Shown piece after piece: positions 7,739-14,462 of a stretch of DNA of 64,000 nucleotides. The translations under genes and the position numbers were made by a program. The stretch lies in sequence record OP557969.1. The stretch is one strand, 5' to 3'. Numbering within the stretch: the first letter of the stretch is position 1; each line of letters begins with the position of its first letter. The notes under the pieces are model-generated. The model made no database searches. It was not told the origin of the DNA and saw only the letters and a list, made by a program, of their open reading frames with translations.

Positions 7739-7767
7739 TGGGACAAACTGGTTCTTAGTGCTATAAT
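7739..7767 (+). promoter_or_regulatory. Early/middle promoter TGGGACA-N16-TATAAT with extended -10
   Basis: TGGGACA 7739-7745, 16-nt spacer ending TGC, TATAAT 7762-7767; upstream of gp55. Confidence 0.7.
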
Positions 7768-11838: not shown

Positions 11839-11844
11839 TAACAG

Positions 11845-11870
11845 AAAAGGGGGCTTATGCTCCCTTTTTT
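11845..11870 (+). terminator. Intrinsic terminator after gp46 (likely bidirectional)
   Basis: AAAAGGGGGC-TTAT-GCTCCCTTTTTT between convergent genes. Confidence 0.7.
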
Positions 11871-11947: not shown

Positions 11948-12442
11948 TTATTTTGTATCTCTTTTTACATCAACCATGTTTAATTTACCGTCCTTAATTA
12001 GCTTTCTAGCTTGTTTTACACGAGCAGTAGTGTTGCTACCAGGGACGACACCTAACCCTTCCAGAATTGCGTTTTGCTGCGTTGCTGGAAGCCTTTTAAA
12101 CTTATTCACATCTACTGTTAGTGCTGTGTGATGTATCACTTGCTCTTCTAGTGGGATGTTGTTGTTCTTTTCAAGATAATCTGCCAGATTTCTTAGAACT
12201 TCATGTAAAGGCATATCAGTTAAATGCTTTCCATATCGGTTCCATGCGTTGGAAACTTTACCTTCAAATGCGTTTATTTCATTCTGTAGAACTTCACGAC
12301 AGTGTTGGTTACCATAGTGGTAGTGATCCAGTACTGGTTTAGTTATTGGTTCCTTAATTATAGGATCAATTCCTTTTTGCTTCTTTAGTAATTCATTACG
12401 ATAGTTTGCAGCTTCTTTACTATCTTTTAATCTTTTCTTCAT
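11948..12442 (-). CDS. gp49: Endonuclease VII-like Holliday junction resolvase (gp49)
   Basis: LDHYH...CREVL...INAFEGKV aligns with T4 gp49 LDHDH...VRGLL...CNAAEGQM, including catalytic D/H/N/E; LRNLADYL and IHH motifs also align. Confidence 0.75.
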   Translation of the reverse strand: MKKRLKDSKEAANYRNELLKKQKGIDPIIKEPITKPVLDHYHYGNQHCREVLQNEINAFEGKVSNAWNRYGKHLTDMPLHEVLRNLADYLEKNNNIPLEEQVIHHTALTVDVNKFKRLPATQQNAILEGLGVVPGSNTTARVKQARKLIKDGKLNMVDVKRDTK

Positions 12443-12535
12443 AAATCCCCACCAAACTAATTTTTATAAAAATATTTATGAGTTACATTAGAGAACAATA
12501 ATTATGTGTTTTTTGATAAATAAATTTAAATTATT

Positions 12536-12564
12536 TGAGACAACTTTGAAGTTTGTGCTATAAT
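12536..12564 (+). promoter_or_regulatory. Early/middle promoter TGAGACA-N16-TATAAT with extended -10
   Basis: TGAGACA 12536-12542, TGC then TATAAT 12559-12564; no credible protein gene downstream. Confidence 0.75.
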
Positions 12565-12570
12565 GTTTGA

Positions 12571-13040
12571 TGTAGTAATGACAATCCTGTTGAATGCAGA
12601 AATGCATATAAATTAGAACCTGATCCTATCGAAAATGTAGATGGCAGATGAGCAGTTCAACAGTGCGATGAGCAGAAGAAACCCGTCAGAAGTGGGCATA
12701 GTTTGAACCCCTCACGGCAATGCGGCTCAATAAAGAACTCCGATAAGCACACAGAGAGTTCCTAGATAGACATATAAGGAATCACACCTTACCAGATTTG
12801 CTAAGGGAGTTTATTAATTGATTTTAATAAACAGCCTGAAGTTTGATTGTATAGACTTTCAGGTGAGTGCTGGGATGAAAAGACCAGTGACCGTTGCATA
12901 TGACCGTGATAGGGAGAAACAGAGCAACCCGCTTCCGTTTGTGATTGATCATTTTTACAATATAGATCCGTCCAAAATTCACGATACAATAAATGCTGAA
13001 ACCATCAGCGTCAAGAAGAGACTTAATTGTCTCTTTTTTA
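12571..13040 (+). ncRNA. Candidate large structured non-coding RNA (~470 nt) or origin-associated transcript
   Basis: Lies between a consensus promoter and a terminator-like hairpin; visibly more GC-rich than flanks; several stem-loops (e.g. TGCA-GAAA-TGCA, GAACTC..GAGTTC, GTTTATTA..TAATAAAC, CCTGAA..TTCAGG, GCTGA..TCAGC); family not recognised; ends approximate. Confidence 0.5.
13013..13039 (+). terminator. Terminator-like hairpin closing the non-coding transcript
   Basis: AAGAGAC-TTAATT-GTCTCTT followed by a T run. Confidence 0.55.
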
Positions 13041-13251
13041 TTACTTTCATTCCCCTGTGGGGGGATGAAAATGTCCTCAACAAATCCCGTCAAGTTTTAA
13101 ATCTTTAAAAGTTCTTTCTAAATTAATTTAATGAAATGAATATGAGTTACGTAGTAACGAATATTCTTCAGGTAACGAATGAAATGAGTTAGCTGAATCC
13201 AATATATTAAAATTAATCTTTCATAATTCAATTCAAATAATTCTGTAGTTT

Positions 13252-13282
13252 AAAAACAAAAAACCAGCAACAATGTGCTGGT
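13252..13282 (-). terminator. Terminator of the gp26 operon
   Basis: ACCAGCA-ACAATG-TGCTGGT stem with a reverse-strand T tract. Confidence 0.6.
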
Positions 13283-13293
13283 AATTATGTGAT

Positions 13294-13503
13294 TTAGTGC
13301 TTCTCGTTTTGTTTTTTAATTTTCTTATTAAAAGACTTAACTAATAAGTCTCTATCTATTAAAGGCATATTAAGAAGTGTTCCATAGTCAATATTATCCA
13401 TATAAACAGAACACTCCATTAGTGCTTGTTTGATTTCTGACTTATTCAGTTCTATCTCCCTTATGACTTCTTGTATTTCTTCAGGAGTTGACTGGAGAAG
13501 CAT
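13294..13503 (-). CDS. Small hypothetical protein, probably baseplate-assembly associated
   Basis: 69 aa, start overlaps the gp26-like stop; LLNMPLIDRDLL resembles small genes that follow gp26/gp51 in T4-like phages. Confidence 0.6.
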   Translation of the reverse strand: MLLQSTPEEIQEVIREIELNKSEIKQALMECSVYMDNIDYGTLLNMPLIDRDLLVKSFNKKIKKQNEKH

Positions 13504-14339
13504 TACTCGAAAAAATGACTAGGATCATATTTTAGTCCATCAATTTCCCATTGATGATTACAGTTACTACATTCAACTTCCATAGTATGGGAGACACCAA
13601 TCTCAAGTACTTCATCCATTTTTTCACGAATTAGTTTAAGAACTCCCTTCGATTGTTGACCGAGCCATTCATTAATAAATTCCTTTTCAACTACTTCATC
13701 ACCGTCTGGTGTTATAATTTTTGCAATAACTCCACCAATCATATCAAAATTAAGTTGAGCCATACTTTCAAAAACTTCTGAAAATATTTTTACTTTTTCA
13801 TCATTGTCAATATCAGCAGTTTCAAGAAACTTGGTTTTTTGTTGTTCGTTGAACATGCGTTCTGCAAAAGATGAATATTCTTTCCATGTAAGTGGTTTAA
13901 ATTCCAAACGTAGACCGTTATCCAAATCAACAGAAGGAATTTCACTAAATGATTTCGCAGTTTCAAGTAGATATGATAGATTACGCTCAAAGCGTCCCTC
14001 TTTTTCACATTCAGGACATACTACGTTAATGTCATATGTTTCTTCTTTCGAAGCAACTTTAATTGCAATAAGAAGCATTTCAACGTCATTTACATATAGT
14101 TCATCTGCATCAATTACATTCGGAACACAGTTCTCAATCACACGTGATACTGCATCACCATTTAGTAGCATATCTGGTGTATTCAGTGTCATTTCATCAC
14201 GTGCACTACGTGCACAAACTCCGCACTTGACACCTTTTGGTCCTAGTACTCCATCTTTATAAGGAATAACGCCGTTTGTAACCAACTTAGTACTGATCTC
14301 TTCAATTTTAGTGTACTTAGCAAGTGGATTCATAGCCAT
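13503..14339 (-). CDS. Baseplate hub assembly protein, gp26/gp51-like
   Basis: Start reassigned to MAMNPL (14339); RDEMTL...DVEMLLIAIKVAS...CPEC and C-terminal CSNC motifs typical of the gp26 family. Confidence 0.75.
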   Translation of the reverse strand: MAMNPLAKYTKIEEISTKLVTNGVIPYKDGVLGPKGVKCGVCARSARDEMTLNTPDMLLNGDAVSRVIENCVPNVIDADELYVNDVEMLLIAIKVASKEETYDINVVCPECEKEGRFERNLSYLLETAKSFSEIPSVDLDNGLRLEFKPLTWKEYSSFAERMFNEQQKTKFLETADIDNDEKVKIFSEVFESMAQLNFDMIGGVIAKIITPDGDEVVEKEFINEWLGQQSKGVLKLIREKMDEVLEIGVSHTMEVECSNCNHQWEIDGLKYDPSHFFE

Positions 14340-14374
14340 TTTGTTAAATCTCCATGTAATAAATGTGTTTGTAG

Positions 14375-14382
14375 TATTTATA
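14375..14382 (-). promoter_or_regulatory. Late promoter TATAAATA (gp26 operon)
   Basis: Exact reverse-strand TATAAATA; divergent from cATAAATA at 14424-14430, which serves the tape-measure/portal operon. Confidence 0.65.
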
Positions 14383-14462
14383 ATACTAAAAACAAACAAT
14401 TTTTTTATATTATATATAGTTTCATAAATATTTCTATAATACATCTATTAAAAGGGAATGTT

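Follow-up and report, generated by a model that had tools for sequence, protein, structure and literature searches.

A promoter-driven unit in a gene-free gap

What does a phage genome carry where it appears to hold no protein gene? The question is raised by a stretch of 64,000 nucleotides (hereafter the window) that forms part of the genome of Escherichia phage ph0011 (Asteriusvirus; OP557969.1). An earlier note on this DNA had pointed to a gap without genes, and indeed no ORF on either strand fills positions 12443-13293. Two readings of the gap were offered at that time, namely an unrecognised class of structured non-coding RNA and a transcript that primes an origin of replication. Within the gap lies a promoter-driven unit that spans 12537-13097 and carries no conserved ORF, and whose downstream limit probably reaches ~13200. 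Its GC content is 39-47%, compared with 22-28% in the flanking spacer, in agreement with the GC-richer segment described previously. The main parts of the unit are as follows.

12537-12564, + strand: sigma-70-type promoter matching 10-11 of 12 consensus positions, with TG present
12537-12542, + strand: -35-like GAGACA, followed by a 16-nt spacer
12556-64, + strand: extended -10 element TGCTATAAT (TG-n-TATAAT), ending at 12564
12571-13097, + strand: conserved RNA body, ~527 nt here, with 17 helices and 3 pseudoknots

The promoter is of a strong extended -10, sigma-70 type that host RNA polymerase should recognise, and its position implies that transcription would start at ~12570-12572. A strict form of the pattern (GRGACA-N12-14-TGnTATAAT) has only 13 matches in the 348-kb genome, all on the + strand. 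Because these sites include some that precede operons for replication and recombination, specifically a gp47/gp46-like operon (window position 7740), a UvsX/UvsY/helicase operon (41174), and a primase/helicase operon (52384), the claim that the unit shares its promoter with replication genes was correct. One of the 13 sites also drives a tRNA cluster.

Conservation and covariation of the fold

The conserved body is defined by two alignments, A2 and A4, of which A4 comprises 25 sequences, and an nhmmer match covers positions 12581-13095. RNAalifold predicts 77 pairs, 40 with double changes. The model with 17 helices and three pseudoknots has 93 pairs that are 91.9% paired, versus 37-45% in slid controls, and its covariation score is 0.432 versus 0.04-0.11 when slid. 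Relatives of the locus exhibit both conservation and covariation, with double compensatory changes in 52 of the 93 model pairs, and none of 500 shuffles reaches the model. The pairs with the highest mutual information are almost all Watson-Crick. Furthermore, the helices are kept in 16 independent sequences that lay outside model building, where new compensations are present. The MFE is -147 kcal/mol (z = -4.7). Approximately 120 of the 538 positions in A4 (about a quarter) are invariant, and many of these are located in loops and junctions.

Judging by the orientation of the promoter and by the many G.U pairs, which on the opposite strand would turn into A.C mismatches, the RNA appears to be transcribed in the + direction. 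Covariation on this scale shows a sequence constrained to keep approximately 17 predicted helices and three long-range pseudoknots, and the locus almost certainly belongs to a family of structured RNAs.

Architecture from the 5′ side to the center

12587-94 with 12656-63, + strand: pseudoknot PK1, CUGUUGAA with UUCAACAG, detected by covariation
12594-98/12603-07, + strand: H1, with a GAAA loop, within the PK1 span
12626-30/12640-44, + strand: H2, with loop GAAAAUGUA, within the PK1 span
12652-54/12664-66, + strand: H3, whose loop is the 3′ partner of PK1
12669-12791, + strand: central domain, containing H4, H5, PKx, H6, and H7
12669-73/12725-29, + strand: H4, which encloses H5; three of five pairs compensatory
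12683-86/12714-17, + strand: H5, which has a variable arm
12720-22 with 12771-73, + strand: PKx, a tertiary pairing of AUG with CAU
12735-40/12756-61, + strand: H6, GAACTC/GAGTTC
12775-79/12787-91, + strand: H7, TAAGG/CCTTA
12800-12809, + strand: single-stranded GCUAAGGGAG, nearly invariant and Shine-Dalgarno-like

The two strands of PK1 differ between lineages yet stay complementary, with the variants CUGAUUGA/UCAAUCAG, ACAACGG/CCGUUGU, CUGAAAGG/CCUUUCAG, and, in RaK2, AUGUUGG/CCAACAU. Tandem G.A/A.G pairs (12650-51/12667-68) flank H3. A hairpin of the form TGCA-GAAA-TGCA had been noticed at 12595-12606 and is present there, in a stretch that is variable and poorly aligned. The repeat of GATGAGCAG at 12647 and 12667 is likewise as described. 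A pairing between GAUG (12647) and a 3′ CGUC in the RNAalifold output was rejected because GAUG is invariant and the change of CGUC to CUUC in RaK2 is uncompensated.

In the central domain, PKx exhibits double changes from G-C to A-U and from U-A to C-G. Compensatory support for the stems that had been seen by eye varies in degree. H6 is where it had been placed, and all six of its pairs covary. The CCTTA strand (12787-91) had been paired with a downstream TAAGG, which was wrong, as its partner is the TAAGG located upstream (12775-79); in relatives, TGAG in place of TAAG is accompanied by CTCA in place of CTTA. The stem formed by GTTTATTA and TAATAAAC exists at 12809-16/12825-32 as proposed and has only one clearly covarying pair. 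UAAGGGA is invariant in all 25 of the A4 sequences, with no conserved ORF downstream.

Architecture of the 3′ side and the end of the RNA

12834-12990, + strand: 3′ domain, containing H9-H13 and PK2
12834-41/12857-64, + strand: H9, whose loop AUUGUAU (12846-52) enters PK2
12846-52 with 12984-90, + strand: pseudoknot PK2, AUUGUAU with AUACAAU
12868-72/12885-89, + strand: H10
12905-09/12979-83, + strand: H11
12912-16/12932-36, + strand: H12, with the invariant 15-nt loop AAACAGAGCAACCCG (12917-31)
12938-42/12972-76, + strand: H13, which bears an optional UACAAUAUAG...CCGUCC module
13013-13040, + strand: H15 (AGAGAC/GUCUCU) and U6, intrinsic-terminator-like in a terminator scan
13046-69, + strand: H16, UUCAUUCCCC-UGUG-GGGGGAUGAA, a C4/G6 3′ hairpin
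to 13097, + strand: conserved tail ...CAACAAAUCCCGUCAAG, which follows H16
13130-13200, + strand: downstream module, in which the hairpins covary and ACGAA(G/U) motifs recur
13146-58, + strand: hairpin GUUAC-GUA-GUAAC of the downstream module
13172-92, + strand: hairpin (G)UAAC-GAAUGAAAUGA-GUUA(G) of the downstream module

PK2 is 98.9% paired, and four of its seven pairs are compensatory. All seven are formed in 15 of the 16 independent sequences, which include the new variants UUCAUGU/ACAUGAA, UUCAUAC/GUAUGAA, CUCAUAU/AUAUGAG, and UUCGUGU/ACACGAA. Two further stems noticed by eye, CCTGAA/TTCAGG (12835-40/12858-63) and CTGG/CCAG (12870-73/12884-87), are confirmed with compensatory support. GACCGUUGC is also invariant in the 3′ domain, and variants of H12 are seen across metagenomes. 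The GCTGA/TCAGC stem that had been listed at 12995-13009 is present and is specific to the lineage of ph0011.

The unit had been thought to be ~470 nt long and to close at 13040 with a terminator-like hairpin. This hairpin exists (13013-13038), but it is not the end of the unit, and the proposed length is too short, because conservation continues through 13046-13097 in nearly all copies, including those without H15. Where H15 is present, four of its six pairs are compensatory; it is missing in copy 4, in 12 of the 16 independent members, and in most metagenomic lineages. H15 and U6 are a lineage-specific insert, perhaps one that serves as a partial terminator. The CGUCA(A/G) motifs located in 13046-13097 and at 13010-13015 vary in step from lineage to lineage: the A/G change affects alignment columns 573 and 662 together, and RaK2 has CUUCAAG at both sites.

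The downstream module is found behind nearly all copies, also where they have no + strand gene after them. Its stems covary (CAUUC/GAAUG, CAAUC/GAUUG, CAUAC/GUAUG, CUAAC/GUUAG), and the module either extends the RNA at its 3′ end or is a repeat element at the DNA level.

Comparison with known RNA families

At the gathering threshold, none of the 4227 covariance models of Rfam 15 matches anywhere in the window, as the cmscan search suggested earlier has now established. Over 12300-13400, relaxing the threshold to E values up to 10 yields only terminator-like and snoRNA noise far below threshold, and four divergent members of the family (L144, L115, L092, and L068) also match no Rfam 15 family. 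ARAGORN reports 0 tRNA or tmRNA genes in the window, where RNase P models have no match either. Group I and group II intron models are without a match, and the copies are intergenic behind their own promoter rather than inserted within a gene. The statement that hallmarks of tmRNA, RNase P, and group I/II introns are absent agrees with both the Rfam models and ARAGORN. A CR-V-like ACAGAGCAACCCGCUU was considered for P4 of RNase P and rejected, as covariation identifies it as the loop and 3′ strand of the local hairpin H12.

A local resemblance to the hammerhead ribozyme is found at 12646-12669, where CAGAUGAG-[hairpin]-CGAA has G.A and A.G flanking the hairpin (G.A in 23 of 25 sequences, A.G in 25 of 25). 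However, an A stands in place of the conserved U of CUGANGA in CAGAUGAG. The assignment was rejected: H2 forms a closed hairpin, the strand that follows GA is paired with 12725-29, and the helix connectivity given by covariation is unlike the hammerhead three-way junction. Hammerhead covariance models also gave no match. Literature searches found no earlier description of the RNA family. The suggestion of an unrecognised structured RNA class has been upheld by an RNA that is multi-copy and covarying, with three pseudoknots, no Rfam, tRNA, or tmRNA match, and no conserved ORF, and whose promoter class also serves tRNA and replication/recombination operons.

Copies in phages and islands

The ph0011 genome holds four diverged copies, each inside a gap free of CDSs, all on the + strand, and scattered at 61, 116, 198, and 314 kb of the 348 kb. 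No further paralogues were found within the window, and the other three copies all lie outside it. The family occurs in RaK2-like jumbo phages and, beyond them, in a few bacterial anti-phage islands. Across 73 related jumbo-phage records it occupies 302 places, with 3-5 copies per genome, and copy 2 sits after a sigma-factor gene in Asteriusvirus and RaK2 alike. The same GRGACA-N-TGnTATAAT box is located upstream of all four ph0011 copies, and TGnTATAAT precedes 33 of 41 family members, island copies among them.

Intact copies with their promoter also occur in islands of E. coli (LR-29-1 among them), Citrobacter, and metagenomic origin, and these copies are nested inside the phage clade. The enterobacterial islands are integrative and also hold defense genes. 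No replication or structural genes were found in the islands, which are small (~10 kb) and chromosomal. Other than an unrelated DUF4326 domain, no consistent homologues of the island proteins were found in ph0011. A deep-branching relative is present in bacterial-looking DNA beside MFS transporter and BNR-repeat genes, and a search of a plasmid collection gave no match. Scans with 16-nt and 18-nt patterns gave many chance matches, and two of the three genome matches from such scans were discarded as chance. Likewise, 14 of 34 IMG/VR matches and 85 of 120 metagenome matches were set aside as unrelated GC-rich coding DNA.

Possible functions of the RNA

The best reading of the interval is that it is a self-contained gene for a folded non-coding RNA of ~530 nt, or possibly ~630 nt with the 3′ module. 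With the RNA in the window, ph0011 has four diverged paralogues. From the comparative evidence, we put the probability at approximately 0.6 that the family represents a new class of large, stable RNA that acts in trans and not as a cis replication element. The folded RNA might serve a conserved factor of host or phage as scaffold or partner; alternatively, it might be a machine made of RNA only, comparable to GOLLD and ROOL or to a ribozyme. Candidate contact surfaces would be the invariant loops AAACMGRGCAACCCG, GACCGUUGC, UAAGGGA, and GAAAAYGUA, together with the paired CGUCA(A/G) motifs. Several copies per genome could provide dosage or sub-specialised variants. The unit of promoter plus RNA might be portable like a moron, which would explain its movement from phages into islands that carry defense genes.

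A rather doubtful extension of this proposal is that an RNA machine, either a ribozyme or a self-assembling RNA like ROOL and GOLLD, serves as a currency of phage-host conflict, that jumbo phages keep 4-5 specialised paralogues of it, and that integrative defense islands have captured a phage copy. Perhaps island RNA made from the same promoter would be a decoy or interferer that titrates the partner of the RNA during infection by a jumbo phage. No partner protein was found to accompany the RNA in every context, and this counts against action in trans.

Foremost among the alternatives is that each copy is a replication origin. In ColE1, a folded RNA of ~550 nt (RNA II) is the precursor of the primer, and in T4, origins start from R-loops made from promoters. 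By analogy with ColE1 RNA II and T4 oriF/oriG, the folded RNA would read through the G-rich hairpin into AT-rich repeat DNA and form a persistent R-loop, whose RNA would be processed by phage RNase H and prime leading-strand synthesis; the islands would carry the unit for replication by an infecting phage. Such systems resemble the present one in having a promoter-driven transcript of ~0.5 kb (predicted here) that is co-regulated with replication, and conserved sequence and AT-rich DNA past an apparent terminator. The replication and recombination genes of ph0011 are T4-like, an RNase H is annotated in its genome, and the promoter is common to gp46/47-like, UvsX/UvsY, and primase/helicase operons. 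The four copies are spread over the 348-kb genome in a single orientation, and past the U-run come the conserved C4/G6 hairpin, the tail, repeated ACGAAG-type motifs, and a spacer beyond the unit with 26% GC. Dispersed copies, co-regulation with replication, and AT-rich downstream DNA with repeated motifs would also fit replication origins. Conserved sequence that runs past a canonical U-run terminator is a further observation that counts against a role in trans.

However, the fold is far more complex, pseudoknotted, and loop-conserved than those of ColE1 RNA II or the T4 origins, and its three covarying pseudoknots and invariant loops exceed what R-loop priming is known to need. The downstream 'repeats' lie in hairpins with compensatory stems and are thus RNA-like rather than iteron-like. 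Cumulative GC skew is featureless at the loci beyond gene orientation. Copies are also found in ~10-kb islands in which replication genes were not found, and in bacterial-looking DNA. Of the two readings first offered, a non-coding RNA class is therefore strongly supported, and the origin primer is weakened by the elaborate fold, the island copies, and the deep relative; we consider it unlikely.

It is decidedly improbable that the RNA belongs to a longer transcript and acts there in cis, for example as a processive antiterminator or as a leader for downstream + strand genes. Genes on the + strand do follow copies 2-4, and conserved sequence continues after the internal terminator-like hairpin as if read-through were intended. 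However, the gene next to the window copy, and to its syntenic orthologues, is convergent, and these copies stop at its terminator, which leaves the window copy nothing to regulate; neither this copy nor the orthologues lie upstream of a same-strand gene, as a riboswitch or leader would. Downstream genes vary between copies, and the island copies converge on a repressor gene.

Only a slim chance can be given to a mobile or selfish element, in which an intron-like, ribozyme-based, or recombinase-guiding RNA would spread in phages and islands. An element of this kind could explain why a genome holds multiple copies and how they moved horizontally into islands, and it could also explain the position of the RNA immediately after a large serine recombinase gene in several islands and the short direct repeats (AUC-NN-CGUCAAG) that flank the H15-H16 segment. 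The copies are nevertheless old, with 60-76% identity after divergence, keep their synteny from genus to genus, and are not recent insertions. No gene for a recombinase, reverse transcriptase, or endonuclease is a regular neighbor of the copies in phages, intron and ribozyme models find no match, and no gene is interrupted.

Lastly, comparison effectively refutes a protein product, whether from the 96-aa ORF (12818-13108) or from some other small ORF: although the 96-aa ORF is annotated as hypothetical in ph0011 and has a Shine-Dalgarno-like AAGGGAG 9 nt upstream of its TTG start, it is missing from the 93%-identical UE-S1 copy, 121Q, and most other copies, family members share no ORF at the same position or in the same frame, indels are not multiples of three, and stem substitutions are compensatory.

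Relation to other large RNAs

To our knowledge, large bacterial and phage RNAs whose structural complexity is of ribozyme grade are rare, the known examples being OLE, GOLLD, ROOL, HEARO, and raiA. Each of these opened new biology or structure. The family that includes the ph0011 RNAs is previously undescribed and would be an addition to Rfam. In the annotation of more than 70 deposited jumbo-phage genomes, it accounts for four of the largest gaps or for spurious 'hypothetical proteins', and its counterparts in defense-carrying islands are a hint that the RNA takes part in phage-host conflict. The RNA is also tractable: the coliphages Sharanji and slurp01, which carry it, plate on E. coli K-12, and a clear promoter, a natural series of paralogues, and three covariation-defined pseudoknots are available for mutate-and-rescue experiments.

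ORF-free loci are also present in a distantly related jumbo phage, Pseudomonas phage PA5oct, where RNA-seq defined ncRNA001-004 of 236-619 nt (PMC7318152). Two of the four, ncRNA001 and ncRNA002, are highly transcribed (PMC7318152). Our comparison covered ncRNA001, 002, and 004; the three were rejected as homologues, as nhmmer --max gave no match and the signature motifs are absent.

GOLLD and ROOL are large 'ornate' non-coding RNAs associated with phages and prophages that form RNA-only cages (PMC12286853). Like them, the jumbo-phage RNA is at least 500 nt long with many helices, pseudoknots, and highly conserved loops, and is encoded by stand-alone genes of phages and mobile elements with a sporadic distribution. 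It differs in having no sequence or covariance-model similarity to either, even at E values up to 10, and in occurring in Enterobacteria and jumbo myoviruses with 4-5 diverged paralogues per genome. GOLLD and ROOL are often located beside tRNA genes, whereas the jumbo-phage RNA is not regularly so: in ph0011 a distance of at least 10 kb separates every copy from the tRNA cluster, and only one member (L068) lies near tRNAs, at a distance of ~3 kb.

A structured RNA family in RaK2-like jumbo phages

The DNA at window 12537-13097 of Escherichia phage ph0011 is a copy of a portable RNA gene that carries its own promoter and whose product is strongly selected for an elaborate tertiary fold. The window matches ph0011 (OP557969.1) at 100% identity, with record positions 186000 higher than window positions; the phage is an Asteriusvirus in the 121Q/PBECO4/RaK2 group of jumbo myoviruses. 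A blastn comparison of the interval with 50,697 phage records yielded matches in 73 records, all of them from RaK2-like jumbo phages, with 302 RNA places in total and 3-5 per complete genome. The hosts of these phages are Escherichia, Salmonella, Klebsiella, Erwinia, Serratia, Yersinia, Cronobacter, Pectobacterium, and Xanthomonas. Three further copies are present in the rest of the ph0011 genome, and all four reside on the + strand in 0.7-kb CDS-free gaps with the same promoter box ahead of each.

Copies in ph0011 (record positions; identity to the window copy)
198.5 kb, +: window copy (reference), between the endonuclease VII and baseplate-hub genes
314.8 kb, +: copy 2, 94%, directly 3′ of a sigma-factor gene
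116.3 kb, +: copy 3, 76%, CDS-free gap
61.2 kb, +: copy 4, about 80%, CDS-free gap

A diverged copy in RaK2, which belongs to a different genus, likewise follows the sigma-factor gene, and the window's copy is syntenic in phage 7t3. Therefore, the paralogues are old.

Covariation supports a complex tertiary fold

When 23-25 distinct copies (60-95% identity) are aligned, invariant blocks alternate with stems whose two strands change together. RNAalifold proposes 77 pairs from this alignment, 40 of which exhibit double compensatory changes. The top ranks of a mutual-information scan are occupied almost exclusively by Watson-Crick pairs, and the scan also revealed three long-range pairings.

Long-range pairings from mutual information (window positions, + strand)
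12587-94 (5′ strand) with the loop of hairpin 12652-66: PK1
12720-22 with 12771-73: PKx
Loop of hairpin 12834-64 with 12984-90: PK2, which stacks on helix 12905-09/12979-83

A structure model of 93 pairs in 17 helices was derived from the same alignment and scored by pair counting, with the 3′ partner slid by 1-3 columns or with 500 shuffles as controls.

Scores of the model and slid controls
Cells paired: model 91.9%; slid 37-45%
Pairs changed on both sides: model 52; slid 13-22
Covariation score: model 0.432; slid 0.04-0.11
Shuffles at or above the model's score: 0 of 500

Because the model came from the alignment on which it was scored, we also ran a held-out test with 16 later-obtained sequences from metagenomes and chromosomal islands. 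In 15 of these, every PK2 pair forms (the other has 6 of 7 pairs, at an alignment gap), and PK2 appears in four variants not seen before. Fourteen members retain H3, H4, H5, and PKx, the exceptions being the deep-branching relatives L144 and L115, in which the 5′ domain is unalignable and the 3′ domain (PK2, H10-H13) is retained. H11 and H12 are kept in nearly all 16 sequences, and new compensations occur in H4 and H11. Covariation among relatives, which the earlier note had proposed as a check, is evident both in the held-out helices and in the 52 of 93 pairs that change on both sides. Frequent G.U pairs would become A.C mismatches on the other strand, which points to + as the functional strand. 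Folded as a single sequence, the window copy gives z = -4.7.

All the stems previously picked out by eye exist at their proposed positions and most have comparative support, but two need correction. CCUUA (12787-91) had been matched with a downstream UAAGG, but its actual partner is the upstream UAAGG (12775-79); GCUGA/UCAGC (12995-13009) is present but is confined to this lineage.

A near-invariant tandem G.A/A.G flanks a hairpin in the string CAGAUGAG-hairpin-CGAU (window 12646-12669), and the loop of this hairpin is the PK1 partner. This arrangement is reminiscent of a hammerhead core or a sheared-GA motif. Neither the hammerhead resemblance of CAGAUGAG...CGAA nor the RNase P resemblance of ACAGAGCAACCCGCUU holds up against the connectivity defined by covariation.

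An optional module of ~35 nt (...UACAAUAUAG-stem-CCGUCCAAAAUU) is located within H13 at window 12943-12971, and its alternative site in other copies is the H8 arm (12809-12832). The module is found in either arm, in both (copy 3), or in neither (121Q copy 1), and judging from these sequences it seems to behave like a transposable peripheral RNA module.

Promoter and gene-free surroundings

The 850-nt stretch at window 12443-13293 contains no credible gene and is bounded by strong intrinsic terminators.

Surroundings of the window copy (window positions)
11843-11870, +: intrinsic terminator (12-bp hairpin and U-run), 3′ of the gp46-like gene
11948-12442, minus: endonuclease VII gene, one flank of the gap
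13263-13282, minus: intrinsic terminator (ACCAGCA...UGCUGGU and U-run) serving the small ORF and baseplate-hub genes
13294-14444, minus: small ORF and baseplate-hub gene, other flank

The promoter, which is of sigma-70 type, and the GC-richer segment described earlier are both borne out: GAGACA is followed by a 16-nt spacer and a TG-n-TATAAT that ends at 12564, and the body has 39-47% G+C, compared with 22-28% in the flanks. The strict form GRGACA-N12-14-TGnTATAAT, which may define one temporal promoter class in Asteriusvirus, has just 13 matches in the genome of 348 kb, every one of them on the + strand. Four of these drive the RNA copies, one drives a tRNA cluster, and three head replication and recombination operons, in keeping with the claimed sharing of this promoter with replication genes.

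Strict promoter sites at other genes (all +)
Window 7740 (record 193740): gp47/gp46-like operon
Window 41174 (record 227174): UvsX/UvsY/helicase operon
Window 52384 (record 238384): primase/helicase operon
Record 299598: tRNA-Ser/Arg cluster

Neither the UE-S1 copy, although 93% identical, nor 121Q has the 96-aa ORF that had been considered as a possible translated product, and across the RNA family no ORF has a conserved position or frame. This ORF, annotated in ph0011 as the "hypothetical protein" WAE77185.1 (window 12818-13108), is almost certainly a false gene call over the RNA. The same holds for several small ORFs that have been annotated at the corresponding place in 7t3, JP4, E9.1, and others.

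The 3′ end and downstream sequence

The terminator-like hairpin and U-run at which the unit had been thought to end (13013-13040) are present, but this hairpin is missing from copy 4 and from 12 of the 16 later sequences. Conserved sequence continues 3′ of it, so the functional unit is longer than the earlier note proposed. Beyond it come a C4/G6 hairpin (13046-69) and the tail ...CAAAUCYCGUCA(A/G), which reaches 13097; both persist in nearly all copies, with a variant tail in L144 and L115. The H15-H16 segment lies between two CGUCA(A/G) motifs (window 13010-13015 and 13090-13095) that evolve jointly from lineage to lineage: A is replaced by G at both sites, and RaK2 has CUUCAAG at both. This pattern suggests two equivalent recognition sites, or perhaps a duplication upon insertion of the terminator hairpin.

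Another 70-120 nt are conserved 3′ of the tail (window 13130-13200) and recur at the same position after most copies (e.g., at L010:740-800 and L003:2010-2080). This module has repeated ACGAA(G/U) motifs and two hairpins with covarying stems (CAUUC/GAAUG, CAAUC/GAUUG, CAUAC/GUAUG, CUAAC/GUUAG), and it occurs even at copies with no + strand gene 3′ of them. It could be either a 3′ extension of the RNA or a DNA repeat element.

Relatives in chromosomal islands and bacterial DNA

Among 5,426 complete E. coli genomes, two have a single intact copy each, promoter included. The ~10-kb E. coli island lies next to ffs; it encodes an integrase and the candidate defence system PDC-M45 (DuOB, DUF488, mSLOG-DUF4326) and also contains IS3. 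In strain LR-29-1, it carries a split tyrosine integrase, IS3, the RNA, a 318-aa protein with repeated CxxCxGxG zinc fingers, PDC-M45, and a resolvase-type recombinase. A second island family, which is integrated beside ppdD/hofB, carries a copy in Citrobacter amalonaticus P55 and in several enterobacterial contigs from metagenomes. Its conserved gene order starts with a large serine recombinase and continues with the RNA, an S24 repressor of CI type on the opposite strand, a Ner-like HTH protein (HTH_35), and a 286-aa protein; the cargo is variable, such as Kiwa KwaB (L075) or an LprI-like protein. This family and the E. coli island have a 118-aa secreted protein in common.

Loci with relatives
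L047:7958-18300 (NZ_AP027515.1), next to ffs: E. coli LR-29-1 island, ~10 kb
L075:3733-14625, L143:8767-13745, L050:1845-6991, beside ppdD/hofB: second island family
L144:940-1620, minus; L115:8020-8700, minus: deep-branching relatives

The RNA-carrying islands of both types showed no genes for replication or virions. Island copies nest within a phage clade, with Serratia phage BF-type copies, and this placement in the tree indicates that the islands captured the RNA from phages.

When metagenomes were scanned with an anchored 18-base pattern, 35 of the 120 matches proved to be true loci; the rest are chance matches within GC-rich coding DNA. L144 and L115 keep the promoter, TGTTATAAT, the G-rich hairpin, and a 3′ domain that includes PK2, and their 5′ domain is very different. 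L144 is located between genes for an MFS transporter and for large BNR/sortilin-repeat proteins; these neighbors look bacterial and suggest a bacterial branch of the family.

Relation to known RNAs and possible functions

The family appears to be new. The Rfam search proposed earlier (Rfam 15, gathering thresholds and E up to 10) matched no known family for the window copy or the most divergent relatives, and no published description was found in the literature searched. ARAGORN reports no tRNA or tmRNA, in agreement with the claimed absence of tmRNA. Four ncRNAs have been defined by RNA-seq in the distant relative PA5oct, and there is no homology to its ncRNA001, 002, or 004 (PMC7318152). In kind, the family belongs with GOLLD, ROOL, and OLE among the few orphan RNAs of phages and bacteria that are large and ornate, but it differs from them in host range, its paralogue series, and its link to defence islands.

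Most likely, host RNA polymerase makes the RNA early and abundantly, like the phage's tRNAs, and the RNA acts in trans as a folded, stable molecule. Perhaps its invariant loops bind a conserved partner, or it might operate as an RNA-only machine. The main rival is that the transcript primes an origin of replication, as co-regulation with replication genes, the dispersal of copies in the genome, and the conserved sequence and AT-rich DNA 3′ of the terminator would suggest. However, such a complex structure, the RNA-like covariation in the downstream module, and the copies in islands and bacterial DNA argue against priming. Cumulative GC skew tracks gene orientation and speaks neither for nor against it. 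A cis-regulatory role was rejected for the window copy, which is faced by a convergent gene.
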